From positions 5,766,001-5,830,000 of the forward strand of contig OY740804.1 in assembly GCA_963514005.1 (NCBI GenBank): a stretch of DNA of 64,000 nt, given 5' to 3'. Within the stretch, counting starts at the first letter, position 1; each line of letters begins with the position of its first letter. The notes below the pieces were generated by a model. That model did no database searches. It saw only the letters and a list, made by a program, of their open reading frames with translations, and was not told where the DNA came from. Below are positions 5,559 through 64,000 of this stretch, piece after piece. Made by a program: the position numbers and the translations under genes. The stretch is from Raja brachyura (Eukaryota).

Positions 5559-5595
5559 ATGTTGGTGCCAATTCTTCTTATTTGTTTCTTGCCCG
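5559..5595 (+). CDS. Gene A signal-peptide exon (MLVPILLICFLP)
   Basis: ATG plus 37 nt, hydrophobic, then G|gtgagt. Same length and phase as the leaders at 24358 and 40442. Confidence 0.8.
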
Positions 5596-8500
5596 GTGAG
5601 TAACATTCAGAATTGGACATTCTGATAATTAGTATTGGTTTGCGCGTTATAGATTGTTTCCACTGCAGAGATGCAGTGCTTTTAATGTTTAATGTTTTGT
5701 GCATCATTCCTAACTGTCACTGTATGTCATGTTGTCACTTGCGGGCGGAGCACCAAGGCAAATTCCTTGTTTGTGAATACTTGCCCAATAAAGTTATTCA
5801 TTCATTTATTCATTCAGATGGTTAAAAATGTGTAGCCACGTAAAGCTGCAAAATGTTCAGCACATAATAATAGGACCAGTATTGGAATATAGGCACGTAA
5901 ACACACTCTCTCGCTGTAACATGGTACTACACAAATCATCACCCATGTATCCAATGTGTACTTCAAATAGCCCTTGCTTTACCTCTGTCTCCACCCCCTC
6001 CCCTTTCCCAGTTCTCTCACCAGTCTTACTGTCTCCAACTACATTCTTCCTGCCAACTTCACTGACATCAGTCTGAAGAACAGTCTCGACCCGAAACGCC
6101 ACCCATTCCTTCTCTCCAGAGATGCTGCCTGTCCTGCTAAGTTACTCCAGCATTAGTGTCTACCAGCGGCATGATTGTTGATTTCTCAAACTGCAAGGAA
6201 CCGTTGCATTCCCTCTCTCTCCGTCCCTCCCCCACCCTAGTTTTCTTGCTAATTTCACCAATATTTATTCCTTTATTATCACCTCATCCCCAGCCAACAA
6301 TGGACCATTGTGGACTCCACCTTTCTTGAGTTATCGATGTGGGTTCTACGTTGTTCTGTACTTTCCCATACCCCTAGTTTCACCCTCCCTGACTCACAGT
6401 CTGATGAAGGGTCTCGACCCAAAATGATTCCTATTCAAATTTCTCCAGAGATGCTACCTGACTCGCTGAGTTACTCCAGGATTTTGTGTCTATCCGAGAC
6501 TATGATTGATTGTGAAATAAGCAAAATGGGAGTTTATTTTTAGTAAGTTCATCCAAGTAATAGCTTCAAAGTGTAGATGCACCCATTCCATTTTGTAAAC
6601 ACTTTAACAGTTTCCTAGTTCTTATTAAAAGCTGTTGTGGAATAACATTGTCTCCACATAGGTTATCTCCAAATTATACTACACCGATTATTTAATATAT
6701 GATGTATGAAAAATAAAATGGCTCCAGATCATGGGTGAAGAAATTAAATGAGAAACTTGACTGTTTCAACAGCATTCTCGACATTAGTAATGAGTTTTCA
6801 TGTATCATATATATGGTCTACATATTGGAATACCATAGTGGTATACAGACACACTGAACTTTGGTGGACAGAAGATCCTGTTTCCGCGCTGTATCTTCAA
6901 AGTAAAGTGTAAAGTCAGTTGTTCAAGGCAGTGGAGGGTGACCCAGGGATTCATCCTAGATCTCTTGAGTTGAAAGTAACCCTAGAATGTACTGATCCGG
7001 GTGGGGGGGAAGTACAGACATGGCTGGTCCAACAATGCCAATGACTGCACTTCAGACTAAAGTCATTGGGGAACAAGGGCAGAATAGGGCCATGCATGGA
7101 GAGGGAAAGCAAATTGGTGGATGATCAAGGAGGCTTCCCCTCCCCCTTCTCATTACCACCTCTCCCCTCCCTTTACCACCCCTCCCCTCCCCCACCACCA
7201 CCACCCCCTCTCTGCCAGGTTTCCCCTTCCTACTAAAGTTTGCCTGGATAAAGGTCCTGACACAAAACGTCACCTGCCCATTCCCTCCACAGATGCTGCC
7301 TGACCTGCTGAGTTACACTTTTTTTTAATACAAATACTTTTACTTAGAAACAAAACAAACATACAAAAAAAAGTTACACAATCAAAACAGCCTTTGTGGC
7401 ATTTTACAAAATAACAGTCATCAATTTTAAAATAACATTGTCATCATCGGGATTACATTCGACCTCCCGCGGCGACCAGCATTCACGGAAGGCCTGCAAA
7501 GTCACTGAGTTACACCGGGACTTTGTGTTGGGCTCAAAGGTAAGTGAATGTCCACACACGGGTTCGACCATTCAGCCCCACGCAGATGTGCAGACATTTC
7601 ACCCATGCCTCTTCCTCCCTTTCCCCCTTGTCCACTGCCAAATATACCCCTCTCTCTGACTTTACATTTTGCTTCTCTGCTCTCTTATCTTACAACCTTT
7701 GGACCACTTTTCACCTCCAGTCTTTGTCCACCCGTGAACCAGTCCAAATCCCCCCCCCCCCCCCCCCCCTCATCTGTGTCTACTTGTTATGCTGCCTATC
7801 CCGCTGAGTTACTCCAGCATTTTGTCCCTATCTTCCACCTGTCACTTGCCAGGCTTTATCCCATCCCCACCTCTCTTCCAGCTTTCCCCACCCTACTCTA
7901 ATCAGCCTGAAGAAGGGTCCCAACCTGACAAGTCACGTGTCCATTCCCGCCACAGATGCAGTCTGATCTGCTGAGTTACACCGGCACTTTGTGTTTGGCT
8001 CAAGGGTAAGTGTATGTCCACACACGAGTTGGACCATTCGGCCCATCGGTGGTTAGAGTGGGTGGGCCAGCATAAGCTGTGTTAAGTAGATTTGTTCCGT
8101 ACATTTTCCTAACATGTTACCTTTCAGTTTCAGGTGCACTGTGGGCAAAGAAATATGTAAGAGGAGTTGTGGGAAAATATATCACAATCGATTGTCACTA
8201 TGCAGCAGAGCACCGCTCACACACAAAGTACTGGTGTCACGGGTGGACTCGCTGGTGCACAGTTTTAGTGGAAACAAATGGGCAACACGGACGGAGTGGA
8301 AGAGTGTCAATCACAGATAACCCGGCACGAGGAATATTTACTGTGACTGTGGAGGATCTTCACTCTGGAGATAGAGGATGGTACAGATGTGGAATTACTA
8401 AACCTGGCTTTGATCCAATGTTTGAAGTTCATCTCCAAGTATCTGGCGGTACGTTTCGCAGCGATTGACTTGACGTCTCCACTGAAACGCCTAATCCATG

Positions 8501-11500
8501 TTTTCTCCGGGTAGGGTCAGGGCAGCACCAATATCCCGAGGCTCCGCAGCAGTGCAGAGGCCTGCGGGGAGCGGGCGGGGGTCGGGAAACCCCCACTCAT
8601 GTTGCTCTCACCCAGTGCGGGCTCTGTCCCACTGAGCGGCCACACACTTCAAGTGGGATGCTCAGCACATGTCCCTGCCTCTGCACGGGCTTGTAAGACA
8701 AGTGTCGATGGCGTGTGTTGGTCAGCGCGAGCAACTTGGGTGGAAGGGCCAGTTTCTACGCTGTATGAATCTGTACCCATATGAAAGATTCCAAACTGGT
8801 GGCTCTGGCTGAGATGAAGATGAGGTGAAAATTGTAGTGTCTCATTTTCAGATGTTCACTCAGTGTCTCACTACCTGCTCTATTCCCACAGAAACCCTGT
8901 CTGTTCCTGTGCTTGGATTTTTGTCACCAGCCATTGTCTCCTGTCTCGGGGCCTCAGTGACAGTGTCCTGTGAGTCGGTCCGGGGATCCCTTCCCATTAG
9001 CTACACCTGGTATGAAAAGACCCCATCTGGGGATTCAAAGATCTCAGACAACAATAACCTGGATCTACATTGTCAATCATTCCAACACCAGCACCATCAA
9101 TATTATTGCACAGCCTCAAATCAATGTGGATCAAAAACCAGTGAAATGGTCAACGTGTCCATCTCCAGCAGTGACGTGCCTTGCAGTTTCCTTGTGAAAA
9201 CCTACGGCGCTGGTAAGTAGTGGAGGGAATGAGGACAAGAAGGGGAAGTGGGGGTGGGGTGGTTCATAAGATCATGTGGTAGAAGCCTAAATAGACCATT
9301 TAATCATGGCTGATCTATCTTCCCCTCTTCACCCCATTCTCCTGCCTTCTCCCCATAACCCCCGTCACCATGAAATCAATGCACGTTATTTAATTAACTT
9401 ATCAATATTAAAACGATGGAATTATGGTTCATTTGTCAATACTTGGTTGCTGAGCTCCAGAAATAGATTTGACAGTGCTGTCAAATAGACAGTGCTGATA
9501 TAGGCCAGCTTCCTGACTCGAACTACCTCTTATGTTCACACAGCTTTAAACTAGGTTTGCAGTGACATCAGTCCAAGCAAATTCACTTTCCCACCAACAT
9601 CTCCACATGATCCACACTCTGATATGATAAGGGATCAGAAATTATCCGTAAATGTGGCCACAGTTATCTTCTAGACGACAGTATCAGATTTGGTCCACTG
9701 TGTTAATGTTGACCATTCAGTACCATCGATACTAATCCCATTTACCAGCACCTCGTCCATTGTGGCTATTCAGGTACCTCTATCTTCTCGGTTTACATTT
9801 TTTTCTTGATACCCTTGAACCATCCTGCTCCTTTACTTAACCATGTGTTCTCCACTTTTACACATATCTGCCATGCAATATGTTCCATAAAATACCCTGT
9901 CTCTGCTGCTCACAGTTTTGCACACCTGTAATAGGTTCTCCCTTGCTCACCTGTTCTGCATGGAATTTTGTAAGACCCTTATCCAGCCCCTCCCCATAAC
10001 TATAATATTTCATCCCAAATGTGAAAATTGGGATGAAATTACACTAAATGTGAAATTGCACCCTTTTGATTAGTTTATGGATACATCGTGGAAGCAGGCT
10101 CTTCGGCCCACTGAGTACGCAACGTACACTAGTTCCATGGGGACAAGTTATAGAAGCCAATTAACCAACAATCTTGCAAGACTTCAGAATGCGGGGGAAA
10201 CTGGAGTGCTTGGAGAAAACGCATGCAGTCACGGGGAGGAGGTACAAATTCAGTACAGACAGCATCCGTAGTCAGGATCGAACCCATGCCTCTGGCGCTG
10301 TAAGGCAGCAACTCTACTACTATCAACACCTGGCACCAGAGTTGTTACCAGCACTCCAGCTTGTTATGATAACATCTTCCATTTGCTGCAAATCACATTG
10401 AAGAAGCATTACCCTGTCCCTATCATTACCCTATCAACTCCTTACATCAGAAAATCATACCTCCTTGTTCAACTGCAAGTGAAAAGCAGTGAAACTGTCT
10501 TTTATTTCCATGTTCCAACAGGTCATGAATATTCTTGTGAACATTTGAAAACATCCAATTACTCTGCAAGGTAAACCGCTCTGTTTCCAATGAAAGTTAC
10601 ATTGTACTAATTCCTGCTGTGCTAATTGGGAATGGTTTAATTGGGAGAAAGTTGTGCCTTCCTTTCACTGGCACATGTGTAAGAGTATTGATCTGAAAGC
10701 ACAGTGGCACAGCCTGTAGAATCACAGCCTCACAACGCCATGACATAGGTTCATTAGATGCTGTACCGCTGTCCATGTGTGATCTGTAAGTTTTGCCTTC
10801 AATTGTGTTGGTTTCATGTAAGTGCGCCAGTTTACTCCCAGCTCCTGAAGACGTGTCAGTTGTAAATTGCCCCGTGTGTACAGGAGAACGGTTGAATCTG
10901 TGAAGAGTGGGTGGGGCGAGGAGGGGAGGTGGGGGAGTTGTTGGACGGTAGTGGTAGTTGATGAGAAAGTGGGGAAAATAAAAATAGGATTGACACAGGA
11001 ATCATGTGAAAGCAGTTGACCGAACGGCCAAATTGCCTGTTTCTATACTGTGTTTCTCAATGGGACTTTGATCCAAGGAACCCAAATATCAGGAAGCATA
11101 ATCAATGTTTGTACATGTTTCAAGCCTGACACCAAATATAAATGTATCTCTTAAGTATTATTTAGTAATATATATAATTTGCAAACCAGTTATTAGTTAG
11201 CTCGTCAGAAGGGGATTTACACTGGGTTTATATCTCATTGTGTTGTGTATATGCTTGGATGATAAGAACAAGTTCCTCTATTTGCTGTTTTCAGAGAGCG
11301 CTCCCTGCAGTATTCACCATGACTTATCCATCACTAACCTCATCCCATGCTGTGAGATGAATATAGTTGCCAAACCCAAGTCTTGCAGTTTACCTTTGCT
11401 GAGACTTGCTCTGGTGTGGCGTTGATAGGAACTCCACTTGATATCACTTGTGGCAAAACCTTGCTATTGATGGGGTCATACACCAAAAATACTCTGGCGT

Positions 11501-12763
11501 AGAATGTGAGAAGACAGTCTTGAATCAGACCGAAATCAGCAAACTCAGTTAACTGACCCTCTCTTACATTGAACCTTGGAACCATTAAAGAAATATTATC
11601 CTTGAATATTCCATCACAATATCGTCATGAAAGTGGGAACACTTTGTTATTTATCTTATTACAATTGAAATAGGTCTGGCTTTCTATCACACTCGTGGGT
11701 GAACGTCTCGACCCAAAGCCTCACGCATTCCTTCTCGACAGAGATGCTGCCTCCCCTGCTGTGTTTCTCCAACATTTTGTGTCTATCTACTCATCCTCAG
11801 TCTTGTAGCCATGCTCCAGCAATGAGGTTAGTAGTAGTGATGATATGTTGTCCCTGCCCCCAGTCCAACCCCCGTTATTTCTGCAAGCTGATCTCCATTG
11901 GCTCTCCTGCTTCGCGCCGCTCCACTTCACCAAGATTATGAAGCAAATAACAGCTAAATGTTTTAAATATAAACCGTCTCATTTTCTTCCATTGATTCTA
12001 TATCTCTTGCTCTTTGCACAGTTACATCTCATGGAAAGTGGGGCGCTGGCTCCTCTTTCTCCTGCTTGTAATCTGGAGTATCTCAACCGCGGTGTTCACA
12101 AGAGGCTCTATGGTAGGTTTTATTGTCATCATGGTCATAAATGATAGGAGCAGAATTAGGCCATTCACCCCATCATATCTGATCTGCCCCCAATCACGGC
12201 TCATCTATTCTTCCCTCTCGATCCCATTTCCCTGCCTTCTCCCCATAACCCTTGACATCCTTATTTAGCAAGAATATGAAAATCTCCCACTTAAAAATAT
12301 CAATCGATTTGGATATATACAAAAATGCTGGAGTAACTTAGTGAAACAGGCAGCATCTCCGTGGTGAATTGACTTGGCCTCCACAGCGTCCTGTGGTAAT
12401 GAAATCCATACATTCACCCAAGTCTGGCCAAAGCAATCCATTCTGTATCCAAAAGGTTTCCATTACTGCTTTCCAATATCCTGTCCATTGATAGAAACAA
12501 AAACCATGCACGTTTTCATATCCTAACGTCAAATCAAATCTCTATGTAGATGATATCATGAGGTTTTGTCCGATTGTACGTGTGCAGGGTGGATTTCTGT
12601 GGCCAGTGTGGATTTGTTGGGGTCCGTCTTCTAGACAGCAATGGGAGTGGTCGGGTCAAACAAAGCGTGGTTCCCACTGTCAGTGAGTCTGATGACTTCA
12701 CATTGTCTTTTGCAGAGACACAATGAGTCAGAACCTCGCCACTCGGCCCATCAATTACAATGA
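5559..12763 (+). CDS. Gene A: CD300/pIgR-like (MDIR-type) Ig receptor, leader-V-C2-stalk-TM-short tail, 288 aa, activating-type
   Basis: Exons 5559-5595, 8128-8448, 8892-9212, 10522-10570, 12022-12112, 12716-12763. All have AG/GT boundaries, intron phases are 1,1,1,2,0, and the total is 867 nt open to TGA. AATAAA at 13147-13152. Confidence 0.85.
7319..7504 (-). mobile_element. 5'-truncated L1/Tx1-type retrocopy with poly(A) and an 11-bp TSD
   Basis: TSD CTGAGTTACAC at 7308-7318 and 7505-7515. Poly(T) at the left end. Minus strand reads TLQAFRECWSPREVEC, resembling a Tx1 ORF2 C-terminus. Confidence 0.75.
8128..8448 (+). CDS. Gene A Ig V-set exon (CD300/pIgR type)
   Basis: [34 protein letters not shown], with the extra C-C' cysteine pair. 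cag acceptor, gtacgt donor, 321 nt. Confidence 0.92.
8892..9212 (+). CDS. Gene A Ig C2-type exon
   Basis: [26 protein letters not shown] motif. acag acceptor, gtaagt donor, 321 nt. Confidence 0.9.
10522..10570 (+). CDS. Gene A 49-nt stalk exon (GHEYSCEHLKTSNYSA)
   Basis: ttccaacag acceptor, AG|gtaaac donor. Conserved at 34342 and 56009. Phase 1 to 2. Confidence 0.82.
11297..11356 (+). pseudogene. Donor-dead 60-nt S/T/P-rich stalk pseudo-exon in gene A
   Basis: Reads ALPAVFTMTYPSLTSSHAV and ends AG|atgaat where GT is expected. Paralog at 60217. Confidence 0.5.
12022..12112 (+). CDS. Gene A transmembrane exon (SYISWKVGRWLLFLLLVIWSISTAVFTRGSM)
   Basis: ttgcacag acceptor in phase 2, hydrophobic stretch, gtaggt donor. 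Paralog at 35472. Confidence 0.85.
12716..12763 (+). CDS. Gene A terminal coding exon ([15 protein letters not shown])
   Basis: cttttgcag acceptor, phase 0. Paralog at 36182. Followed by a conserved 3'UTR and AATAAA. Confidence 0.72.
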   Translation, partial: RHNESEPRHSAHQLQ

Positions 12764-24268: not shown

Positions 24269-24357
24269 ATTGCTATTAGAGAGATGTGTTTGTATCTGAG
24301 AGCTCAGAGCTGAGCGACCGACAGACAAGTGCTGGCATTGCCACTATGGATAAAACA

Positions 24358-24394
24358 ATGTGGATTCCCATTCTTCTCATCTCCTCGCTGCGTG
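24358..24394 (+). CDS. Gene B signal-peptide exon ([12 protein letters not shown])
   Basis: 37 nt, G|gtgagt donor, near-identical to 40442-40478. Confidence 0.82.
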
Positions 24395-27300
24395 GTGAGT
24401 GATAGCCAGAACTAAATATTCTAATAATCAATGTTAGTTGGGGCCCCGTGTACTCTTTCCACAGCAGAGATGGATACGAATGTGTAGACATGTAATGGGG
24501 GCAATGGAACTCAGTGCATTGTAGTGTCGGCGTGTCATTTATTTTATCAGAATTTTATGTTGTCCATTATGCCTTTAAATCAGAATACAGTGTTGTTTCA
24601 TATCTTTGATACGCCATAATGGATTGGCAATATAAAGGAAGTTTAGCTTACAGAGTCCGGGCAATGAAACCATTTTATTTCGTGAAAGAGTAACATGCTC
24701 ATAGCTAGGCAAGTTTTCAGGAAGCAGAAAATGTGGAATTAATGTCGCAGATACAATTTCTCCCGCTCACGTTGGTTTCTGTGGAGCTAATGTGGCTGAC
24801 ATATTTTTCTCTCGACTTCCTCTTAAAATTAGGAGTCATTCCCTACACACCCTTTGCCTCTGACTGTGTAGAGTTGTCCGCTTCACCCACATGGCACGTT
24901 AACGATTCTGCTCTGGAATTCAAATAGATTTAATTGTTTTGTTACTGATTTTCACCGGACGAAGGTAGCTCACAAGGCCAGTATTTATTGTCCTGATCTC
25001 TTTTTTTTCCCCTTTCTGGGCCATTGCAGAGGGACGCTTCGGAGCCAAGCTCATTGTGGGGGCTCTGCAGTCGCTTGTAAACAAGTCTGGGTAGGACTGG
25101 TAGATGGGGTTGGGGTGATAATGTCGTGCCTTCATGGTCACAATTGCTGCTATACGTTTCTGTTTTAACCTAATTTTAACCACTGTTGCAACGTGGTCAA
25201 ATTGCATCCATTTATATGCATACCATGGCAACTAGATTTGGAGCATATACTCCAAGTCAGCTGTACCAATAGTCAATAAGTCCAATAGTAGGCTATTCCG
25301 CACTTTGAGGCAGCGCCGCCAATCACTGTGATCATGACTGATCATCCACAATCAGTACCCCCTTGCTGCCTTCTCCCCATGCCCCCCCCCCCCACTACGC
25401 TATCTTTAAAACCTCTATCTATCTCTCTCTATCTACCACTGCACCGCCTGGGATTGTTGAAAGGTAGCTCATAGAAACATAGAAAATTGGTGCAGGAGGA
25501 GGCCATTCGGCCCTTAGAGCCAGCACCACCATTCATTGTGATCATGGCTGATCGCTCCCAATTAATAACCTGTGCCTGCCTTCTCCCCATATCCCTTGAT
25601 TCCACTAGGCCCCAGAGCTCTATCTAGCTCGTGAAACTACGCTGCACTGCCTCAATCACAAGGATACCCTTCCGCAAATTAGGAGACCAAAACTGGACAC
25701 AATACTCCTGATGTGGTCTCACCAGAGCCATTATACAACTGCAGAAGAAACTCTTTACTCCTGTATTGAAATCCTCTTGTTATGAAGGCCAAAATTCCAT
25801 TAGCTTTCTTCACTGCCTGCTGTACCTGCACGCCAACTTTCAGCGACTGGTGTACAAGGACGCCCATGTCTTGCTGCACCTCCCCCTTGCCTAACCTAAC
25901 CCCATTGAGATAATAATATGCTCCCTTGTTTTTGCCGCCAAAGTGGATAACCTCACATTTATCTATATTATACTGCATCTGCCATGCATCTGCCTACTCA
26001 CTCAACCTGTCCTGGTCTCCCCACACCTCCTAACATCGTCTTCACAGTTCACACTGCAACCTAGCTTTGTGTCATCCGCAAACTTGCTAGTGTTGCTCCT
26101 AATTTCCTCTTCCAAATCATTAATATATATGGTAAACAGTTGCGGCCCCAACACCGAGCCTTGCGGCACTCCACTCTCCACTGCCTGCCATTCTGAACAG
26201 GACCCGTTCATACCTACTCTTTGCTTCCTGTCTGCCAACCAATTTTCTATCCATGTCAACACCCAACACCCAATACCATGTGCTCTAATTTTAGTCACCA
26301 GTCTCCCGTGCGGGACCATATCAAAGGCACTGCAACACTGCCGCGCTCTCTCAGTACCGCACTGCGAACCCAGCCCAGTTTCTGCTCAGGGATCTGCAGT
26401 GGGAAGTAAACCCTGATTAAGTAATTATACTGACCCGGGGACAGAACACTGACACAACTGGTACAAGAAGTGCAGCGACTGTACGTCAGACCAGAACCCT
26501 TGACCGTGAAGCAATATGACAACCCTGGAACTTTCTAACTTTTCTTTAATATTATTTTCAAGATGTATCTACTTTCATGAAACGGGTATATTCCTCTCAG
26601 TTCTGAAAGTTTCTCCCCTCAGTTTCAGATGCAGTGTGGGGAGAGAGGGATGTAAGAGGAGTTGTGGGAAGAGCGATCACAATCGATTGTCACTATGCAG
26701 CCGAGTACCGCTCACACACAAAATACTGGTGCCGTGTGCGGAGTCGCCAATGTATAGATATGGTGCAAACAATGGAGCAACATAAACGGAGTGGAAGAGT
26801 GTCAATCAGAGATATCCCGGCACGAGGAATATTTATTGTGACGGTGGAGGATCTTCACTCTGGAGATACAGGACGGTACCGATGTGGAATTACAGCACCT
26901 GGCAAAAAACCAGTGTTTCACCTACAGCTCCAAGTATCTGACGGTACGTTTCTCAGCGATTGACTTGACGTCTCTACTGAAATGCCTGATCCACGTTTTC
27001 TCCAGGAAAAGTCAGGGCGGCACCGATATCCCGAGGCTCCGCAGCAGTGCAGAGACCTGCGGGGAGCGGGCGGGGGTCCGGAAACCCCACCCATGTTGCA
27101 CTCACCCAGTGCGGGCTCTGTCCCACTGAGCGGCCACCCACTTCAACTGGGATGCTCAGCACATTCCCCTCCCTCTGAACTGTATGAAACATCACCCTGT
27201 CGGATGTTTGCATTGCGACTCAAACTAATAATCCGACAGATCAGAGAGAAACAAGTATTCCTCGCGGTCTGAACACCCGAAGAATAATAAACAGCGAATC

Positions 27301-49400: not shown

Positions 49401-52400
49401 TTCAGACCAGAGACATTGTTCATGAAGCAATATGACACATCATGGAACGATTTAGGTTTTCTTGCAAGTAATCTTCAAAATGTACCCATTTTCCATTAAA
49501 CAGTTCATTTGCTCTCCATCTGAAAGTTTTCCCCCTCCATTTCAGTTGCAGTGTGGGGAGAGAGTAATGTAACAGGAGTTGTGGGAAGAGCGATCACAAT
49601 CGATTGTCACTATGCACCAGAGTACCGCTCACACACAAAATACTGGTGCCGTGGGAGAAGTCGCCAATGTACAGATATGGTGGAAACAAATGGGCAACAC
49701 GGACGGAGTGGAAGAGTGTCAATCACAGATATACAGGCACTAAGAATATTTGGTGTGCGTGTGGAAGACCTTCACTCTGGAGATACAGGATGGTACAGCT
49801 GTGGGATTACAACATCTGCCGACCATTCAATGTTCCACGTATATCTCCAAGTATCTGATGGTACGTTTCGCAGCGATTGACGACGTCGCCACTGAAATAA
49901 TCCTCCGACATTTTCGCAACCTACAACGGAATCCCACAAGTAGCCACATCTTTCCATCTCCACCGCTTTCTGCTTTCCGAAGAGACAGTTCCCTCCGCAA
50001 TTCCCTGGTCAATTCGCTCTTTCCCACCCAAACCACCCCGTCCCCAGGTACCTTCCCCTTCAACTACAGGAGATACAACACCTGTCCCTATATCACTCCC
50101 ATCTACTCCGTCCAAGGGTCTCAACAGTCTTTTCGGGCGAGGCAGAGGGTCACTTGCATCTCCTCCAACATCATCTACTATGTCTGCTGTTCCAGGTGTG
50201 AACAAGCGGATGTAGTAGATGGGAGACCAAGCGCAGACTGGGCGATCCTTTCGCTGAACAACTCCGCTCACTCTGCCTCGGCCTTCGCCACTTCCCGATT
50301 GCTAAACACTTTTATTCCCCCTCTCATTCTTAAACTGATCTTTCTGTCCTGGACCTCCTCCAGTGTCAGAGTGAGGCCAAAGGCAAATTGTAGGAACAGC
50401 GCCTCATATTTCGCGTGGGCAGCTTACAACCCAGCGGTTTGAATATTGACTTCTCTAACTTCAGTAACCCTTGCTTTACTCCTGTCTCCATCCCGCCCCC
50501 AACCGAAGCCTCCAATTCGTTTCACTGGCTTCCTGATTATATTTTACTGAGTGTCTGCCTCGGCGTCACCTTCCCTTCAGCTGACAATGATCCATTCTAC
50601 ATTTTCCTTTAACATTGTCACCTTTGATCACTTGTTTTAACACCTTACCCTTCCATTTCTCTTCTGTCACCCCGAACATGACTGTCAGGCTGAAGAAATG
50701 TCTCGACCCGAAACTTCCCCCATTCATTCTCTCGAGAGATGTTGCCTGCTCCGCTGTGTTACTCCAGCATGTTGTGCCTATCCTAAAGGGATCGTGATTA
50801 GTTTTCGCGTTTAAATTTCAAAGCATTGGATAGGGTTATTGGCACGCTAGTCTTCATCAGTGAGAACATTCAGAACCTAATTTGCTTCAGATGTGCAGAT
50901 GTTGAGTCCACACTTTGGGAATTGTGTTCAGCTTTCGTCCCTCAGCTCCATGAAAACTGCCTTTGAGGTGGACGACATTGCCTGGACAGGATGGGATTGA
51001 CGCAGGGAGCGATTGGACAAACTCAGACTACATTCCTGGGTGTGGAAATGATTGAACGAGGAACTTACGGAAATGTATCAATCATGTGAAGCATATTCAT
51101 TTTCCCACGATGTGTGGAATCAAAAAGTGGAGGACAGATGCAATGGGAACTATTTAAAGAGGGGGTAATAGTACGGAGCCATTGACTGTAATGGCATGTT
51201 TTGCACAGATCAGTGACCGAAGCTGAACACAATTCGCCCAAGTTCGAACTCAATCACATAGGTACAACTGAAACAAAACATCCCAACTTATGTTCTGAGG
51301 GACAACATTTTCCACACATTGGGTAATATGCACATGGAACCTGTTGCCAGGGGGAAGTTGGTGAGGCACTAAGAATAACAGCATTTAAGATAAATGTTGG
51401 ATATTTGCATAGATTGGGATCATTGCGAGTGATAAATGAGAAACGCGGATATATGAAAATGCCCTCGAGAGACATGTTGGTCGGCATGAATGAGCTGTTG
51501 CGACGGGCATCTTTCGGTTCTCTATAACTCTAACCTTCTTCGGTTTCTGGGCTTCGCACACTCACAGAGATGTAGATGAGCCGATGAAATATCAACCGGA
51601 GGGTTCGGGCTGAGATAAAGGGCTGCTGAGATTTAGCATGTGTTTGGTTTTTAACTGTTCATACAGGTGACTGAATGTTTGTTCCATTCCCACAGAACCC
51701 GTGTCTGCTCCTGTGCTCAGATATCTGTCACCAGCAAATACCTCACGTCTCGGAGGCTCAGTGTCAGTGTCGTGTGAGTCTGTCCGTGGATCCCTTCCCA
51801 TCCAATACACATGGTTTGAGAAGAACGAGCATTGGGTTTCAACGATCTTGAAAAGCAAGCAACTGGATCTGAGTTGTGAAATCCTCAGAGGTGAACACCT
51901 TCAATATTACTGCACAGCCGCAAATAATCGTGGGACAAAATCCAGTGAAATAGTCAAGGTGAAAGTCTTCAAAGGAGCAGGAACGTGCAGTTATGTGACT
52001 GAAATGAACAATGCAGGTGAGTGTCCCTCTCGTGCCCCTGAACCTGCTGCTATTCACCTTGTGGCGATGTTTGTGGATTTCTTGTTATTTGCAGACGGCA
52101 TCATTGCAGCCACCGTGAGCTCATGGTGTAAAATGCGAGAGTTTGTTTGGGGGACTGGCAAATAATTGCCTGTTGCTTTCACCTGGGAGGTGTTGAGCTT
52201 CGAAAGGAGAGAAAGGCCTGCACTTATCACAACGAGTTGAGTGCATTCCATCAAAGTTCTGCCTTCTGCGTTAAAAATGATTTTCTGGCTGCCGCTTAAG
52301 GTCTCAGTCACTTTGAGACAGAGAAGGCAACCAACTTGATTCTGTTTGGATCCACCATCATTTACATCCAAGGATGTACAATTTCATGATCATGTTCATG

Positions 52401-55400
52401 ATTTTAACTCTGTTAATTGGTGTTAAACTCCAGTAATCTCACAAAATTAAAGTGGTATCTCCTTGACCGTCACTCCATCAAGAATAACCCTTACTTATGT
52501 CAAAGATAATTTTGAAATGAAACCCCATCCTCAACCTCCCCCGTTGATGCAGAGCAGCAGCAGTTAGCACCATCTGCACTATGCAATGCAGCAACTCACC
52601 AAGATTCGCAAGACATTCCCTTCCAATTGCAACAGGCTCCGTGTTCAATGCATCATTCTTCACCATTCACACCCTCATTGGCTGGGAAGCGCTTTGGAAT
52701 GACCTGTGTAGATGGTGAGGGACGGTGTACAGTATCTGTCTCTCATCGCAATCTAAGTGGATTTCAACAGTTAAAAACATCATTAGGCGAACTCCCCTAT
52801 GCACATTGATGCGTACTATAATGCACATATTTGTGAAAGGTTCATTTTGCTCTTCACTTTATGAAAGATTTCCCCTTCAGTTTCAGGAGCACTGTGGGCA
52901 GAGAGCGAAGTAAGCGGGGTTGTGGGAAGAGCGATCTCAATCGATTGTCACTATGCAGCAGTGTACCGCTCACACACAAAATACTGGTGCCCTGGGACAA
53001 GTCGCCAGTGTACGCATGTAGTGGAAACAAATGGGAAACATGGACAGAGCGGAAGGGTGTCAATCACAGATAACCCGGCACGAGGAATATTTACTGTGAC
53101 TGTGGAGGATCTTCACTCTGGTGATACAGGATGGTACAGCTGTGGAATTACTACACCTGGCGAACCAACATTTAATGTACATCTCCAAGTATCTGAAGGT
53201 AGGTTTCTCAGTGAGTGACTTCATGTCTCGACTTTGGCATCTGCATAAAACATATGTTGGGTCACATATGGGAGTCTGGCGCACAGTTCTGGTCGCTGCT
53301 TTATAAAACAAATGATGTGAAAGGTTTGGAGAAGTTGCAGAAAAGGTTCACCGGGATATTTAGTTGTAGTTTACAAATGTAACATGGAAACGGATCCTTC
53401 GGTCCACCGAGTCCGCACCGACTAGCGATCACTGGTCACACTAGTTCTATGTTATTCCACTTTCCCATTCGCTCACTGCACACAAATTTACAATACCGCC
53501 ATTCACACACCTCATTAGTGCCACATTATCACTATCAACAATTCTATACAAGGAAATAAAAAAGTTGTTGATAGTGATACTGTTGCACTAATGAGGTGTT
53601 TGAATGTTGGTATTGTAGAATTATGGCAGAGTTTCAGATTAAAAGAAGAACTGCAGATGCTGGAATTGCAAAACAAAGAGAGATGGTGCTGCTGTGTACT
53701 GGTACAGTGGCAGACATGGTTGTTCGGCAGCTGGGAGGATGGAGAGACACTGAGATGTTCAAATCTGGTAAATTGTGAGGAGAAGGAGCAGAGAAGACTT
53801 ACAAGGATGTTCCGATGACTTGAGGGCCTGACATACAGAGAGGGTTTAAGCGGATTAGGACTTTATTTCTTGGAGCACAGGAGGATGAGGGATGATCTTA
53901 CGGCAGGTAAAAAATCATGCGAGGAATAAATCGATTAAACACACAGAGTCTTTTGCCCAGAGTAGGGGAATCGAGAACCGGAGGACAAAGTTTTAATATG
54001 AGGGGGGAATGATTTGACAGGAACCTGGGGAGTAACGTTTTTACACAAAGGTTGGTAGGTACATGAAATGAACTGTCGACAGAAGTAGTTATGGCAGGTA
54101 CTATCGTAACATTTACGAAAATATTGGACAGGTACCCGAATAGGATATGTTTAGATGGTTAAGGGCCAAGAAAGGGCAGGTGGAACTAGTGTAGTTTGGG
54201 CGTGTTGGTCAGCGTGGGCAAGTTAGACCGAAGGGCCTGTTTCTACGCTGTATGACTCTATGATTCTATGTAGATGGATGGGTCAGATTCCAACCTGGCG
54301 GCTCTGGCTAAGATATGGTGGATATTGGCGAGTGTTTGATTTTCAGATGTTCGCCCAGTGTCTGACTGTTTGCTCCATTCCGACAGAACCCGTGTCTGTT
54401 CCTGTGCTTGGATTCCTTTCACCAGTCAATGACTCCTGTCTCGGGGGCTCAGTGACAGTGTCCTGTGAGTCGGTCAGTGGATCACTTCCAATTAGCTACA
54501 CCTGGTATGAAAATACCCCATCTGGGGATTCAAATATCTCAGATCAAAATGCTCTGGATCTACATTGTCAATCCTTCAAACACCAGCACCATCAATATTA
54601 CTGCACAGCCTCCAATAATAATGGAACAAAATCCAGTGAAATGGTCAATGTGTCCATCTCCAGCAGTGGTATGTCCTGTAGTTTTCTAGTGAAAACCAAC
54701 GGCACTGGTAAGTAGTGGAGGGAAAGAGGAGAAGAAGGGGAAGTGGGGGTGGGGCGGTTTATCAGATCACAATTGATAGAAGCAGAAATAGACCATTCAA
54801 TTATGACTGATCTATCGTCCCCTCTTCATCCCACTCTCCTGTCTTCTCCACATAACCCCGACACCCTGAAATCCATGCACATTCTTTAATGAACTTATCA
54901 ATATTAAAATTATGGATTATTGCCCATCTGTCAATACTTGGTTGCTGGGCTCCAGGAATAGTTTCCCCAGTGCTGGTGAAGGGCAGATTCCTGGCTAGAA
55001 CTTCCTCTTATATTTACACAATTTTAAGCTAATTTTGCAGTGACATCAGTCCAAGCACTTTCACTTTCCCGCCATCATCTCCACATGACCGACACTCAAA
55101 TATGGGAAGGGAACAGAAATTATCCGTAAATGGAGCCACAGTTAAATCCTCGAGGACTGTGTCAGTTTTGGTCCAATGTGATAATGTTGACCATTAAGTA
55201 CCATAGATACTAATCCCATTTACCAGCACCCCACCCACAGTCTTCTCAGACTTGACAATTCAAGTGTCTTCACCATCTAGCTTTTAAAAATTTTCGTTGC
55301 TCAGATACCCTCTAAATATTCTACTCCTTAACCCAACCCTATGTTCTCCACATCTATGCACATCTGCTGTGCTGATTTCCCACAAAGTACCCTATCTATG

Positions 55401-58400
55401 TTCCTAATAGCTTTACACACCTGTAATAGGTTCCCCCTTCATTTCCTGTGTGGATTAAAATCCCCATCTGTGCAGCCTCTCCTTCGAACTGTAATATTTC
55501 ATCCCAGGCACTATCCCTCGCATGCAATCACATCCTTTAGTTCAGTTTAGACATCCAGCGTGGAAGCAGCTGCCTTTAACTAGTTCCATCCTACTAGTTC
55601 CATCCTACTCACTAGGGACAATTTACAGAAGGCAATTAACCTAAAAACCTGCATGTCTTTAGAATGTGGGAGAAACCCGGACCACTTGAATAAAACCCAC
55701 CAAGTCACATGGAGAACATACAAACTCCATGCAGACAGTACCCGTAGTCAGGATTGAACTCGGGTCTCCTGTGCTGTACGACAGCAGCTCAACAGCTGGG
55801 CCACTGTGCCGCCTTTCTGTTGGCGATCTGAGTCGTAACCAGTGGTCCAGCTTATCATGACAACATCTCCCATTTGCTGCAAATTACACTGAACAAACAT
55901 TGCCCTGTCAATTAAAGCTATAAACTCCTTATATCGGACAAACATGCTCTCTTGTTCAACTGCAAGTGAAAAGCAGTGAAACTAATTTTTATTTCCTTGT
56001 TCCAACAGGACTTGAATATTCTTGTGAAACTTCGAAAAACCCAAATTATTCTTCAAGGTAAACTACTCTGCTTCCAATGAAAGGTGCCATCTACTAATTG
56101 CTGGTGTTTTGATTGGGGTTGCTTAAATTGGGAGAAAGTTGTGCTTCAATTGGGAGACAGTTGTGTCTTCCGTTCACTGGCATTAAAGGCCCTTGACAGT
56201 ATTGGTCTGAATGCACAGTGATACAGCCAGTGGAGCCACAGCCTAACAATGCCAAGACCCTGAACTTGTCGATGTGCCATCTATGTGTGTTCTGCAAATT
56301 TCGCCTTTCATTGTGTTGGAAGGAACTGCAAATGCTGGTTTAAACTGAATATAGGCACAAAAAACTGAGTCACTCGGCGGGTCAGACAGAACCTTTGGAG
56401 AAAAGGGATAGGTGACGTTTTGGGTAGAGACCCTTCTTCAGAGTGAGAGTAGGGGGAAAGGGAAACGAGAGCGATATCGATGGTGATATAGAAAGGTATA
56501 AAACATTGAATGATAAATATGCAACAAAAGTCACTATGATGAATGAAACGATTCATTGTTAGCTGTGGGCTAGGTGAAAACGAGTTGTATGGACAATGAG
56601 ACATTACAAGACAACAGTGCCATTTGTACAATGACTAGGGTGGCGGAGGGACGGTGAGAGAGGGGATGCAAGGGTTATTTGAAGTTATAGAAATCAATAT
56701 TTATACCGTTTGACTGTAAGATGCCCAAGCAAAATATGTGGTGCTGTTCCTTCAATTTCCATTTGGCCTCACTCTGGCAATGGAGAAAGTCCAGAATAGA
56801 ACAGTCAGTGTGGGAATGGGAGGGGTATTTAAATAGTTTAGCAACTGGGAGATCATATAGTCCCAGGCAGACTGAGCGTATCCGTTCAGTAAAACGATTG
56901 TCCAGTCAACGTTTGGTCTTGCTGATGTATACGAGTCCACACCTGATCCAATAGATGAGGTTTGAGGCGGTTCAAATGAATTCTGCCGTACCTCAAATGA
57001 CTGTTGAGTTCCTTGGACTGTCGAGGGAGGAGTTATAGGGACAGACTGATTCCTGGGATGTCAGGACTTTCATATGAAGAAAGACTTGATAGACTCGGCT
57101 TGTACTCACTGGAATTTAGAAGATTGAGGGGTGATCTTATAGAAACTTACAAAATTCTTAAGGGGTTGGACAAGGTAGATGCAGGAAGATTGTTCCCGAT
57201 GTTGGCGGAGTCCAGAACAAGGGGTCGAAGGGCCGAATGGCCTACTCCTGTACCTATTTTTCCATGTTTCTATGTTTCTATTTCCTGCAGTTGAACGGGA
57301 AGGTACCTGGGGAGAGGGTGGTTTGGATACGTAAGGATGAGATCACCAGGGAGGTATAGGTCATAAGGCCATAAGGGATAGGAGTAGAATTGGGGCATTC
57401 AACAGGGAACGGTCTCCTGCACACGACCTGGCATTCAAATGAATTTGGGCCATCTCCAAAACATCCCTCCACTTTCTCGATCACACTGTCTCCATCACAG
57501 GAGATAGGCTATCAGTGGATGTCTATTATAAACTGACTGACTCCCACAACTATCTCGACCACACTTCTTCTCACAGGATTTGTGTAAATGTGGTTGATGG
57601 TCAGCGCAGATCTGAAGGGCCAAATGGCCTGTTTCCATACTGTGTCTCTCTATGGATCCTACGAGGCCAAATATCAGAAAATATAACCAATGCTTTTCCA
57701 TGTGTTTCAAGCCTGACACCGAAAGATAAATTTATCTCCTAAATATTCTTCTACACAAGAGTTTAGAAGAATGAGGAGGGACCTCATTCAGACACGCATA
57801 ATAGTGAAAGGCTAGGATAGAATGAATGTGGAGAGGGTGTTTCCACCAGTGGGAGTGTCTAGGATTAGAGGACGTAGCCTCAGACTTAGATGTTCTTTTT
57901 AGGAAGGAGAATATCTTCAGTTCAAGGGTGGTGAATCTGTGGAATTATTTGTCACAGAATGCTGTGAAGGCCAAGTCAGTGTATACACTTAAGGCAGAGA
58001 TAGATAGATTATTCTTTCATACAGGTGTTGGACGTTCTGAGGAGAGGGCAGGAAATGGGGTTAGGTGGGAGAGAATGCTCAGTCAGGATTGTATGGCGGA
58101 GTAGACTTGATGAGCCGATTGGCCTAATTCTGCTCCTATTCCTTATGATCTTATTCTATAATAATATGTATATAACTTGCAACCCAGATATTAGTTAACT
58201 CATCAGAAAGGGAATTGAACTTGTTTACATCTCATTGTATGGTGTATATGCTAGGGTTATCAGAACAGGATCCTTCATTTGTTGCCATTCATAGCCAATA
58301 CGGGCTGAAAAGATGGCCAGGAATATAAAGAAGGACAGTAAAAGCTTATTTAGATATGTTAAGGGGAAAAGCATAGCAAAATCAGATGTGGGCCCCTTGA

Positions 58401-61400: not shown

Positions 61401-64000
61401 CCTTCCCTATTCTCTGTCTGACAGGCTCACTTACATATTTGCGTCTGGTGTCACTGTGTTTCTCCTGATTCTCATCATTGCCTTCTGTTGGTACCGAAAG
61501 CGTAAATCCAAAGGTGAGTTTCCAATTTCCCTTAATAATTTCACAATACATGCCTCAGTTCCTTGCAGAATGTCAAGAGATTTAATTATGTTCTAATCAA
61601 CAAATGCCCTGCATTAAAGTAATAAAGTGTAAAAGGAAGCATGAATGATCAATAATGCTATCATGTTTGATGCTATCATGGTGACACGGTGACAAAAACT
61701 GTTCTTTTAACATCATTGTACAGAAACTGTCTGAGTGTGAAATGGCAGAGTTGTGTGAGAAATAAGAGGCTGGGTAGAAGTAAGATTTACATATTTACTC
61801 TAATTCTCTCAGCTGTTAGAATATGCTTTGTGAGATTAGCTGTTGTATTTCGACTCGGGTTAAGTCGTGTTTATTGCCACATGCACAAGCACGGTGAAGT
61901 AATTACAATGAAGATCACGCTTGCAGCCTCACAGGGACATAGACAACATACAACATACCTGCCTCACACAGAGGGTGGTGGGTATATGGCAGGAGCTGCC
62001 AGAGCAGGTAGTTGAGGCAGGGCAGGTCTAGCCTGGACAGGTAATCCAAGATGTGAATGCCCATGAACTTGAAGCTGCCAACTATCTCCACCGCCGATGA
62101 AAATGAGAAAGTTCACTTTGCTGTGTCTCAGTCAGAGAGCATTAGTGGAAATTATAACAATAAACATTTCAGATCCAAGACCCATCATTACAACAGGGAA
62201 AGAGGGAAAATAGGGGGGAACCTAATTGAAAGATCAAATAGTGAAAGGCCTGGAGACAGTGGATGCAGAATGGATGCTTCCACTAGTGGGAGAGTCTAGG
62301 ACCAGAGGTCATAACCTCAGAATTAAAGGACATTCCTTTATGATGGAGATGAGGAAGAACTTCTTTAGTCAGAGGGTGATGAATCTGTGGAATGTTTTGC
62401 CACAGAAGGCTGTGGAGGCCGTCAATAGATATTTTTAAGGTATAGATGGATTCTTGATTGGTACAGGTGTCATGGATTATGGAGGGAAGGCAGGAGAAAG
62501 AGGGAGAGATAGATCAGCCATAATTGAATGGCGGAGCAGATTGATGGGCCGAATAACTTAATTCTACTCCTATCACTTATGAACTTATGAAAAGATTTTG
62601 GAGCAGATAAGGTTAGGGTGATGGACACAAGTTGCTGGAGTAACTGAGCGAAACAAGCAGCATCTCTGGAGAGAAGTAATGTGTGATGTTTCAGGTCGAA
62701 ACCCTTTTTCAGACTGATGTCAGGCGAGTGGCAGTACAGAGATAAAGTATAGTCGAAGACAGTAAGGCCGGCCAGAGAACTGTGAAGGGGGAGTGGATGG
62801 AGAGAGGGAAAGCAAGGGCTACTTGAAGTTAGAGAAGTCAATGTTCATACCACTGGGGTGTAAACTTCCCAAGGAAATATGAGGTGGGGGGTGGGGTAGT
62901 GTATAGGGAATATGATCCATTCTGAACATTACGTACATTAATCAGAACACAGGGCAGATTCTTGGTCCGTACGTGCAAATACACTGCAGTACTTTAGGGG
63001 TTCTCCTAAATATAAGGTCGTGGCAATAACAGGTAGATGTTTGTGTGTTGGGAGGACCTGCAGATTGTGGTTTGCACTGAAGATAAACATAAAATGCTCT
63101 AGCAATTAGCGGGTCGGGGCGACATTTTGCCAGCAGCGCAACAGAAAATCATCAAATATAGTAGTTCTCAGCTTAGCTGGATAAAAGAAACAGATTGAGT
63201 ATATGTGTGTATGTGTGCCTATACACACTGAACTTTTTTTTCTCTCCCGTTATGTACTATGTTTACATATTCTGTTGTGCTGCAGCAAGTAAGATTGTCA
63301 TTGTTCTATCTGGGGCATATGACAATAAAACACTCTTGACTCTTGAAAAACAACAGTTGACGTTTCGAGGCGAGACCCTTCTTCAGACTGAGAGTCAGGG
63401 GGAAGGGAAACGATATATAGAAGGTACATAGAACAAATGAATGAAATATATAAATGAATGATGTTTAAACCTGTTCCTGATATGGCTCTATCGACAACAT
63501 ATTTTCCAGAATCCAAGTACAATGCATCACACGGTGAAGACAACAATGAAATCCAGGTAAAAATGTGAAATATAAATTATCTGAGGGTTGAAAAATATAT
63601 AATATTGAATTATCTGTGTTTACACAGGCCATTTAGCAACACCAGTCCACTCCAGTTAAGAGAACCAGCACAGAAACAGGCCCTTTGGCCCACCGAGTCC
63701 ACACCGACCTGTGACCTCCGCACACTAACACTATCCTACACACACTAGGGACAATTTGCAATTATACCAAACCAATTAACCTACAAACCTGTTGTCGGCA
63801 CTGTCAGGCAGCAACTCTACCGCTGTTCCTCCCTGCTACACTATCTTTGTGTTATAAACAGCAGCCATGGCTTGGCTCTGCACTGAACAGTTTGGGACCT
63901 ATTTTGCAATACACATCTGTTGAGGACCTTTCAAATCTATTAGGTGGTAAAATTGGATTTTGTTATATTTTAGGAAATGGCTGTGTTGGAAGGAAACCAC
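40442..64000 (+). CDS. Gene C (3'-partial): six-Ig-domain CD300/pIgR-like (MDIR-type) receptor V-V-V-C2-V-C2, uncharged TM, multi-exon tail, probably inhibitory-type
   Basis: Exons 40442-40478, 42161-42481, 45345-45659, 49546-49860, 51696-52016, 52881-53198, 54387-54707, 56009-56057, 61425-61513, 63510-63556, 63974 to window end. All are open and phase-compatible (720 codons in the window). I found no second leader or TM exon between them. Confidence 0.75.
42161..42481 (+). CDS. Gene C Ig V exon V1
   Basis: ORF 42172-42501: [19 protein letters not shown]. gtaggt donor. Confidence 0.9.
42806..43614 (+). mobile_element. CR1 LINE 3' fragment
   Basis: [16 protein letters not shown] motifs, TCTATG tail. 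Confidence 0.88.
44530..45265 (-). mobile_element. CR1 LINE 3' fragment of a second family, (TTATATGG) tail, with a small Penelope-derived insert
   Basis: ORFs 44989-45216 and 44617-44913 encode the RT C-terminus. The same tail occurs at 41510-41625 (+). Confidence 0.85.
45345..45659 (+). CDS. Gene C Ig V exon V2
   Basis: ORF 45350-45679. ttgcag acceptor, gtatgt donor, 315 nt. Confidence 0.88.
45859..47286 (-). mobile_element. CR1 LINE fragment
   Basis: RT motifs in ORFs 46667-47083, 46234-46449 and 45957-46196. Confidence 0.9.
47690..48420 (+). mobile_element. Penelope-like element remnant (GIY-YIG endonuclease and terminal repeat)
   Basis: [27 protein letters not shown]. Confidence 0.78.
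49546..49860 (+). CDS. Gene C Ig V exon V3
   Basis: ORF 49551-49880. tttcag acceptor, gtacgt donor, 315 nt. Confidence 0.88.
49898..50780 (+). mobile_element. Penelope-like element remnant
   Basis: [24 protein letters not shown]. Paralog of 47690-48420. Confidence 0.78.
51696..52016 (+). CDS. Gene C Ig C2 exon C2a (divergent C2 subtype)
   Basis: ORF 51701-52165: [24 protein letters not shown]. cacag acceptor, gtgagt donor, 321 nt. Confidence 0.88.
52881..53198 (+). CDS. Gene C Ig V exon V4
   Basis: [35 protein letters not shown]. cag acceptor, gtaggt donor, 318 nt. Confidence 0.88.
53230..54270 (+). mobile_element. Old interrupted CR1 3' fragment upstream of C2b
   Basis: Degenerate RT C-terminus and tail. 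Its 3' part recurs at 27825-28100/28756-28850 and its tail at about 8710-8775. Confidence 0.65.
54387..54707 (+). CDS. Gene C Ig C2 exon C2b
   Basis: ORF 54260-54715. Close paralog of the gene A and B C2 exons. gtaagt donor. Confidence 0.9.
56009..56057 (+). CDS. Gene C stalk exon ([16 protein letters not shown])
   Basis: Paralog of 10522-10570. Confidence 0.8.
56310..57575 (-). mobile_element. Penelope-like remnants (minus-strand GIY-YIG/terminal part; + strand RT piece at 57470-57575)
   Basis: Similar to the copies above. [21 protein letters not shown] motif. Confidence 0.65.
57040..57281 (+). mobile_element. Short CR1 3' fragment nested in a Penelope remnant
   Basis: [16 protein letters not shown] motif and tail. 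Confidence 0.8.
57750..58153 (+). mobile_element. CR1 3' fragment
   Basis: [10 protein letters not shown] motif and CR1-type 3'UTR. Confidence 0.7.
58295..60216 (+). mobile_element. CR1 LINE (ORF2 middle and 3' part) inserted at the acceptor of the pseudo-exon
   Basis: [13 protein letters not shown] and [10 protein letters not shown] motifs, TTCTATG tail. ATAG on both sides (possible TSD). Empty site in gene A at about 11295. Confidence 0.9.
60217..60276 (+). pseudogene. Donor-dead 60-nt S/T/P-rich stalk pseudo-exon in gene C
   Basis: tag acceptor, [19 protein letters not shown], ends AG|atgagt (one base from gtgagt). Phase 2-2. Confidence 0.55.
61425..61513 (+). CDS. Gene C transmembrane exon ([30 protein letters not shown])
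   Basis: Pyrimidine tract plus acag. The phase-2 start matches the stalk exon. About 22 uncharged residues, then a basic stop-transfer sequence and G|gtgagt. Confidence 0.85.
62240..62590 (+). mobile_element. CR1 3' fragment
   Basis: [25 protein letters not shown]. Confidence 0.75.
63510..63556 (+). CDS. Gene C cytoplasmic exon 1 ([16 protein letters not shown])
   Basis: ttttccag acceptor, open in phase 1, CAG|gtaaaa donor. Confidence 0.6.
63974..64000 (+). CDS. Gene C cytoplasmic exon 2, truncated by window end (EMAVLEGNH...)
   Basis: T-rich tract ending in ttttag, open in phase 0. Confidence 0.5.

Follow-up and report, generated by a model that had tools for sequence, protein, structure and literature searches.

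A probable skate cluster of modular domain immune-type receptor genes built from shared exon modules and two membrane anchors

We analysed a 64,000-nucleotide stretch of the genome of Raja brachyura (assembly GCA_963514005.1, contig OY740804.1, positions 5,766,001 to 5,830,000 of the forward strand), hereafter called the window. Our results indicate that the window is probably part of the skate locus for MDIRs (modular domain immune-type receptors), with three tandem genes for type I membrane receptors that carry two types of anchor. We call these genes A, B and C. That all three are structurally intact MDIR genes is very likely. The assignment is carried by exon-by-exon homology to a named skate MDIR and by trees of the individual domains. 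The cluster is well preserved but of a kind already known, and its receptors are not of a new kind.

Exon anatomy of the three genes

Immunoglobulin (Ig) exons were located by tblastn, with the open reading frames (ORFs) of the window searched against the window itself, which holds no run of undetermined bases. All searches were made exon by exon. The resulting inventory, all on the + strand, consists of three leader exons, six exons for variable-type (V) domains, four for C2-type domains, three stalk exons of 49 nt and two unrelated anchor modules. The V exons lie at about 8.1, 26.6, 42.2, 45.3, 49.5 and 52.9 kb and the C2 exons at about 8.9, 29.0, 51.7 and 54.4 kb (tblastn). Every V exon matches the Pfam V-set domain (6/6, E 2.6e-13 to 2.8e-11), and all four C2 exons match Ig_3, Ig_2 or Ig_C17orf99. 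The leader exons, located with batoid proteins from the first word search, are the only three in the window (5559, 24346/24358 and 40442); each ends in phase 1 with the donor GTGAGT. To find the remaining exons, a C2 exon of the subtype called C2b below was scored against a library of 1.84 billion proteins. It gave 1062 matches at E<=1e-3, of which 224 reach E<=1e-10 and 46 reach E<=1e-30, and 35 of these relatives were used to locate the exons for stalk, transmembrane helix (TM) and tail.

Gene A, 5559-12763 (leader, V, C2b, stalk, TM, tail)
5559..5595, +, leader exon, MLVPILLICFLP plus G, phase 1, donor GTGAGT
8128..8448, +, V exon (V1), tandem acceptors ending at 8127 and 8133, both exon ends in phase 1
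8892..9212, +, C2 exon of the C2b type
10522..10570, +, stalk exon, 49 nt, G-HEYSCEHLKTSNYSA-S, phase 1 to 2
12022..12112, +, TM exon, YISWKVGRWLLFLLLVIWSISTAVFTRGSM, Lys/Arg at the outer edge, 30/30 identical to clearnose-skate MDIR5
12716..12763, +, terminal exon, stop TGA at 12761-12763

Gene B, 24346-36229 (layout as in gene A)
24346..24394, +, leader exon, ending with an added G
26623..26943, +, V exon (V2)
28974..29294, +, C2 exon of the C2b type, extra Cys changed to Arg at 29153-29155
34342..34390, +, stalk exon, 49 nt, stalk Cys changed to Ser
35472..35562, +, TM exon with Lys/Arg
36182..36229, +, terminal exon, then stop

Gene C, 40442 to past 64000 (leader-V-V-V-C2a-V-C2b-stalk-TM-cyt1-cyt2 onward; four V and two C2 domains)
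40442..40478, +, leader exon, ending with an added G
42161..42481, +, V exon 1 (V3), 91% identity with the first V of Amblyraja radiata XP_032898097
45345..45659, +, V exon 2 (V4), downstream acceptor only
49546..49860, +, V exon 3 (V5), downstream acceptor only
51696..52016, +, membrane-distal C2 exon (C2a), groups with the first C2 of MDIR5
52881..53198, +, V exon 4 (V6), 83% identical to the second V of MDIR5, with which it groups
54387..54707, +, membrane-proximal C2 exon (C2b), FCRL5-like
56009..56057, +, stalk exon, 49 nt
61425..61513, +, TM exon, 89 nt, no charged residue
63510..63556, +, cytoplasmic exon 1, 47 nt
63974..64000, +, cytoplasmic exon 2, EMAVLEGNH..., ends at the window edge

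The initial annotation of this DNA had proposed three tandem genes that share leader, V, C2 and stalk exon types and use two unrelated TM/tail modules. All of these exons were located, and all 23 listed segments, including the one at the window end, show an open frame, an AG acceptor with a pyrimidine tract and a GT donor. The V and C2 exons are 315-321 nt long and in phase 1 at both ends. Alignments of exons and flanks give a tandem V acceptor, CAG/TTTCAG/G, and the V donor GAC-G/GTA; the C2 acceptor is CACAG/AACCC and the C2 donor G/GTAAGT, or A/GTAAGT in gene B. Within the window we found no arginine-type TM exon or remnant inside gene C, and no TM or tail of the gene C type behind A or B. 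Downstream of the terminal exon of gene A, a polyA-signal hexamer lies at 13147.

The two members of the tandem V acceptor are 6 nt apart (8126-8133, 26621-26628, 42159-42166 and 52879-52886). Depending on which one is used, the domain junction would gain or lose two residues, Val-Ser. V4 (45343-45344) and V5 (49544-49545) have lost the upstream AG and keep only the downstream acceptor. The residues VSG in front of V1 are there because the upstream member of two tandem acceptors lies at this point. A leader fused directly to V1 was considered and rejected: the upstream ORF, FVPYIFLTCYLSVSG, has no ATG and a stop just upstream. We also rejected the tail of a fourth gene at 3673-3708 (SKIRDESHPGHS), a weak match of 12 residues to the tail peptide of the arginine anchor (E 0.02 in a 5.5-kb search) that has no splice context. 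This match may be a decayed tail exon of an upstream gene, or it may be due to chance.

The stalk exon differs from the Ig exons in its phase. Its 49 nt (3n+1) shift the reading phase from 1 to 2. Skipping the stalk would therefore put the C2 exon into the alternative frame of the TM exon (12021-12071), with a short end of 16 residues, visible in frame 3. The product of such skipping would be TM-less and presumably secreted. That frameshifted peptide forms the end of three RefSeq models, P0008, P0051 and P0167, from Leucoraja and Amblyraja.

MDIR membership and domain types

The name of the MDIR family dates from 2006 (Cannon et al. 2006, Immunogenetics 58:362, as cited in PMC3031540). With P0041, a natural relative of 305 residues, a word search gave 639 candidates, and 63 of these proteins matched at E<=1e-10. 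These matches include Modular domain immune-type receptor 5 (MDIR5, 501 aa) and 2 (MDIR2, 416 aa) of the clearnose skate Rostroraja eglanteria. MDIR5 can be followed through the window module by module.

MDIR5 leader: 12/12 to the gene C leader
MDIR5 first C2: 75% to C2a
MDIR5 second V: 83% to V6
MDIR5 second C2: 80-81% to the three C2b exons
MDIR5 stalk: matches the window stalk
MDIR5 TM: 30/30 identical to gene A
MDIR5 tail: 14/16 to gene B

From the window and 17 relatives, 34 V and 28 C2 domains were taken for maximum-likelihood trees, which agree with these pairings. V6 joins the second V of MDIR5 (support 98/86), C2a falls into a clade of seven rows with the first C2 of MDIR5 (100/99), and the three C2b exons fall into a clade of nine rows with the second C2 of MDIR5 (95/93). 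In these trees Ig subtypes are shared across skate genera; hence the subtypes are older than the genera. The suggestion that the window holds an MDIR-type, CD300/pIgR-like cluster is thus borne out both by homology to MDIR5 exon by exon and by the position of V6, C2a and C2b next to MDIR5 domains.

The abstract of the 2006 description is said to portray MDIR ectodomains as varying numbers of domains from a few Ig subfamilies. In the window, A and B have two Ig exons each and C has six, drawn from two C2 subtypes and several V subtypes common to skate genera. Two anchor forms occur, one with an arginine in the TM (A and B) and one with an uncharged TM (C). The clearnose-skate MDIRs are made of the same modules: a leader, CD300/pIgR-type V domains, two C2 subtypes, a stalk with EYSC, the arginine-TM anchor and a tail. 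MDIR2 has an uncharged TM and a long tyrosine-rich tail, as in the gene C type. The ectodomains of the window differ from both, with an identity to MDIR5 and MDIR2 of only 66-83%, which marks them as further family members or as belonging to a different skate species. Gene C joins an MDIR5-like core of C2a-V-C2b to three N-terminal V exons and an uncharged anchor, whereas the anchor of MDIR5 is of the arginine type.

One claim of the initial annotation was overstated, namely that members and domain arrangements of this system may be undescribed. The three genes are new paralogs, and the arrangement V-V-V-C2-V-C2 does not occur among the 42 relatives compared. However, the family has had its name since 2006, MDIR5 already shows the layout C2a-V-C2b-stalk-Arg-TM-tail, and RefSeq models of other skates have V-V-C2-V-C2 and V-C2-V-C2-V-C2. 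What is left of the claim, that there are undescribed members, is weakly true.

Relatives occur in other cartilaginous fishes as well. Cluster look-ups found them in skates and rays (Rhinoraja, Leucoraja, Amblyraja, Hemitrygon, Mobula and Narcine), in sharks (Mustelus, Hemiscyllium, Stegostoma, Heptranchias and Carcharodon) and in the chimaera Callorhinchus, where GenBank AFK11143.1 is named MDIR2. RefSeq calls such relatives pIgR-like, CMRF35-like, FCRL5, CXADR-like, TRIM69-like or uncharacterized.

What kinds of domain do these genes use? Against PDB, V1 has its highest overall score with pIgR (6e-48), a value summed over several domains. The best single domain is that of CD300f/CLM-1 (2.9e-21, 79.6 bits), followed by CD300a (2.8e-19); NKp44, TIM proteins, TREM2 and FCMR are far behind. 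The extra cysteine pair of V1 (KYWC...C) aligns with the cysteines of the C-C' disulfide of pIgR D1, and both cysteines are present in all six V exons. The V domains therefore group with CD300 as had been proposed, and not with an unrelated family. The C2b exon matches FCRL5 (6e-40), where six Ig domains of the human protein score 18-32 bits each and the motifs PVSxPVL, GSLPI.Y and YYCTA.N are held in common. Since the V domains are of the CD300/pIgR type and the C2 domains of the FCRL5 type, the genes combine both kinds of domain.

One could also argue that these are the Fc or polymeric Ig receptors of cartilaginous fish and not CD300-like lipid sensors. The total score of V1 is indeed highest with pIgR, the C2 domains are FCRL5-like, and the residues RSHTKYWC in front of the C-strand cysteine, near-invariant in all six V exons, align with RHTRKYWC of pIgR D1. 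Yet the best single domain is CD300f, with 79.6 bits compared to 47-52 bits for pIgR D1, and the cytoplasmic tails do not look like the transcytosis tail of pIgR. We consider this alternative very unlikely.

Each of the three families that lend their names to these domains resembles the MDIR genes of the window in part. CD300/CMRF35 proteins have V domains with both the canonical and the C-C' disulfide, and their genes are clustered; in some the TM is charged and the tail short, in others the tail carries immunoreceptor tyrosine-based inhibitory motifs (ITIMs). However, CD300 proteins have a single V domain that is directly followed by stalk and TM, without a C2 domain, whereas in the window one or more FCRL-type C2 domains lie between V and stalk in all three genes, and gene C has four V domains. 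pIgR has tandem V domains of the same subtype as those in the window, and many relatives are named 'pIgR-like' in RefSeq. It has V-type domains only, with a long transcytosis tail and no FCRL-type C2, arginine-TM variants or ITIM tail. In the window, C2 domains are interleaved with V domains, and the tails have 20 residues or would, judging by homologues, be of the ITIM type. FCRL proteins, finally, have tails with ITIMs or with immunoreceptor tyrosine-based activation motifs (ITAMs), but their ectodomains are C2-type only and lack the CD300/pIgR-type V domains found at the N-terminus of the window's receptors.

Membrane anchors and possible signalling

The anchors of A and B are each encoded by a TM exon of 91 nt, which ends in STAVF/LTRGSM/K, and a terminal exon of 48 nt. 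The basic residues lie at the outer (extracellular) edge of the hydrophobic core. Behind this core of 17 residues follows a tail of 20 residues that contains no tyrosine. A TM with basic residues and a tyrosine-free tail of about 20 residues, as had been described for A and B, was thus recovered in both genes. In gene C, RKRKSK directly follows the uncharged TM. The multi-exon tail ascribed to this gene is there as well, with the TM exon and at least two tail exons found. The second tail exon runs past the window end, so no ITIM is visible in the window.

MDIRs are described as a multigene family that includes forms with a charged TM, forms with ITIMs, and others that lack motifs or are secreted. 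For the tail of gene C we have to turn to relatives. Most of those that combine an uncharged TM with a tail of 60 residues or more have one to four ITIM-like motifs. The closest match to the TM and cytoplasmic exons of gene C is Rhinoraja XP_078277138 (P0007), with 68%, 62% and 78% identity, and its tail contains VVYADI, SIYASV and PTYAVV. The helix of this protein (residues 674-701) has an arginine (VTVRLLIL) where the TM of gene C (61425-61513) has a phenylalanine (VTVFLLIL), in a protein whose tail also carries ITIM-like motifs.

The initial annotation read the cluster as a system of paired activating and inhibitory receptors. If A and B signal at all, they would most likely do so through an adaptor with an acidic TM and an ITAM, contacted by the TM arginine. 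Gene C, with its uncharged TM and multi-exon tail, would recruit SH2 phosphatases through the two or three ITIM-like motifs that its closest homologues possess. Both labels, activating and inhibitory, are predictions. We put the chances of such paired roles at about even. Classical paired receptors are encoded in clusters and use common ectodomain exons, with an arginine near the outer TM end and a short tail in one partner, an uncharged TM and an ITIM tail in the other. LILRA/LILRB and PIR-A/B, together with Fc alpha RI and NKp46, follow this scheme and couple through the TM arginine, but belong to a different Ig domain family, with C2 domains only. The genes of the window are likewise clustered and have similar ectodomains: 58 kb hold all three, and protein identity is 76% between V1 and V6 and 80% between the C2 of gene A and C2b of gene C.

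Several observations weigh against paired roles. First, the arginine of A and B sits three residues into the outer end of the TM, at the edge of the 17-residue core and not in mid-membrane. Second, the ITIM-bearing exons of gene C, if there are any, lie beyond the window, and the label 'inhibitory' therefore rests on homologues. Third, the ectodomains of A, B and C are 75-80% identical at the protein level, less than in classical pairs, where ectodomains are near-identical. Fourth, gene B may be decaying, having lost two cysteines that its paralogs conserve. Fifth, MDIR5 is said to have been listed in 2006 as a protein without typical signalling motifs. Lastly, the usual adaptor may be missing, as Akula et al. 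2014 (PMC4016189) report that FcR gamma chain, PIGR and FcRL were not found in shark genomes.

The first, the fifth and the last of these points would also fit an alternative in which A and B do not activate and form no true pair with C. The MDIR5-type anchor would then be a tether or a site of shedding or oligomerisation, and the arginine, which shares the extracellular edge of the core with the lysine, would serve to position the protein in the membrane. However, the arginine of the xxRWxxF anchor is invariant in all 34 occurrences of a relaxed TM motif in a set of 217 proteins from skates, rays and sharks, whereas the residue two positions before it, lysine in the window, varies between K, T, N, S, E and D. 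An arginine on the extracellular side also runs contrary to the positive-inside rule, and a short tail free of tyrosine is typical of receptors that depend on an adaptor. Moreover, Fc alpha RI, NKp46, LILRA and other receptors coupled to FcR-gamma carry their arginine on the extracellular side of the TM. We hence regard a non-activating role of A and B as unlikely.

That the genes are expressed with all their exons spliced together, that A and B pair with an adaptor, that gene C has an ITIM and that the receptors have a ligand are predictions. A search for sequencing runs that contain this DNA returned five DNA entries from two studies and no RNA entry. For expression, the match to MDIR5 and MDIR2, exon by exon, is indirect support; both are database entries without a genome contig. 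A Logan contig of 1028 nt (P0005), which encodes an uninterrupted leader-V-stalk-Arg-TM-tail protein, is a hint that such genes may be expressed.

Cluster assembly and what it may mean

Comparison of the window with itself shows gene B to be a mosaic. Its promoter, leader and intron 1 (23507-24526) match gene C (38928-40605) at 82%, and do not match gene A. Its region from stalk to tail (33952-36658) matches gene A (10124-13189) at 82-87%, and within it the part with TM and tail (35233-36658) matches only gene A (11790-13189, 87%), with no counterpart in C. The idea that the receptors are built from swappable modules is confirmed by this combination of a C-like 5' part with an A-like stalk, TM and tail. 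Gene C contains repeats of its own, made of intron 1 plus a V exon: 40547-42508 resembles 48444-49887, and 41739-42502 resembles 44175-45680. No leader copies were found in these repeated units. The cluster probably arose through tandem duplication, through the copying of 'intron 1 plus V' units and through recombination in which 5' and 3' halves were exchanged, which would have given gene B its C-like 5' half and A-like 3' half.

Pairwise ratios of nonsynonymous to synonymous change (dN/dS) range from 0.40 to 1.06 for V exons and from 0.44 to 0.96 for C2 exons. When the 15 pairs of V exons are pooled, dN/dS is 0.90 for the A-strand start, the C-C' region and the FG loop together (33 codons) and 0.49 for the framework. 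In three pairs of V exons (V1-V2, V1-V4 and V2-V4) the exons are 82-85% alike, compared to 89-92% for 150 bp of the intron downstream. The introns that are more alike than the exons of V1, V2 and V4 lie at 8449-8600, 26944-27095 and 45660-45810. We rejected positive selection on the V loops: their dN/dS of 0.90 does not exceed 1, and their dS is raised too. The loop pattern is accounted for equally well by mosaic gene conversion and by selection. The data fit fast evolution of the ectodomains or mosaic conversion.

Part of the cluster might no longer function. Gene B could be a decaying recombinant and some of the N-terminal V exons of gene C could be skipped or dead cassettes, so that fewer and shorter products would be made. 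Two cysteines that A and C keep are gone from gene B, one in the C2 exon (LHC to LHR) and one in the stalk (EYSC to EYSS); V4 and V5 lack the upstream tandem acceptor; V-exon dN/dS reaches 1.06 in pairwise comparisons, from 0.40 upwards; and debris of long interspersed nuclear elements (LINEs) fills the introns. The double loss in gene B could mean that the gene is decaying, or that the two cysteines form a pair with each other. Against such decay stand the open frames and canonical splice sites of 23/23 exon segments and the constraint on framework codons (0.49, with 0.90 in the loops). In addition, RefSeq models of other skates (P0051, P0170 and P0010) join two V domains before a C2. Partial loss of function seems to us rather doubtful.

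The non-coding parts of the window provide some further observations. A block between the stalk and TM exons is conserved between gene A (11286-11431) and gene C (60206-60351) and is absent from gene B. Translated, the block (...GKCIVN...) is similar to the C-terminal part of the Rhinoraja model P0171, and it could be an alternative terminal exon. LINE debris lies in introns and spacers, at 15102-18489 (- strand), 1938-2876, 13488-14303 and about ten more sites. It includes an L1-like element with an endonuclease ORF (Exo_endo_phos, 1.1e-14) and a coiled-coil ORF that resembles ORF1, as well as many reverse-transcriptase fragments that are 70-88% alike. Contigs from four DNA runs, short genomic pieces with cross-mapping between paralogs and repeats, were placed on 7500-13300; they are exact in organism A and differ by 0.3-3.4% in organism B. 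High-copy repeats at 7694-7887, 9246-9439, 10216-10409 and 11574-12543 reach a summed depth of 10^4-10^6, compared to about 10^2 elsewhere. One of them starts about 20-60 nt 3' of the donor of the gene A TM exon.

What could such genes mean for the evolution of Ig receptors? In bony vertebrates the two kinds of module are found in separate Fc-receptor families, the V domains in those of the pIgR/CD300 type and the C2 domains in those of the FCRL type. MDIRs might be the Ig-receptor system of cartilaginous fish, in which pIgR/CD300-type V and FCRL-type C2 domains are joined as exons of the same genes and the stalk exon additionally switches the frame between membrane-bound and secreted forms. 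We consider this quite improbable. If it were true, the locus would show what the ancestor of both PIGR-like and FCRL-like Ig receptors looked like, or would be their analogue in function. Such a result would also contradict the published view that these receptor types first originated in bony fish (PMC4016189).

In the open literature on MDIRs we found one primary description, from 2006, and almost no follow-up, and genome annotations scatter the members of the family under misleading names. The window gives a clean anatomy of MDIR genes, with symmetrical phase-1 Ig exons, a phase-changing stalk of 49 nt, two interchangeable anchors and mosaics left by recombination. This anatomy should help to annotate the family and to ask how exon shuffling generates paired receptors. 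That pIgR/CD300 and FCRL domain types occur within one cartilaginous-fish gene bears on when the building blocks of Fc-receptor-like proteins came about.

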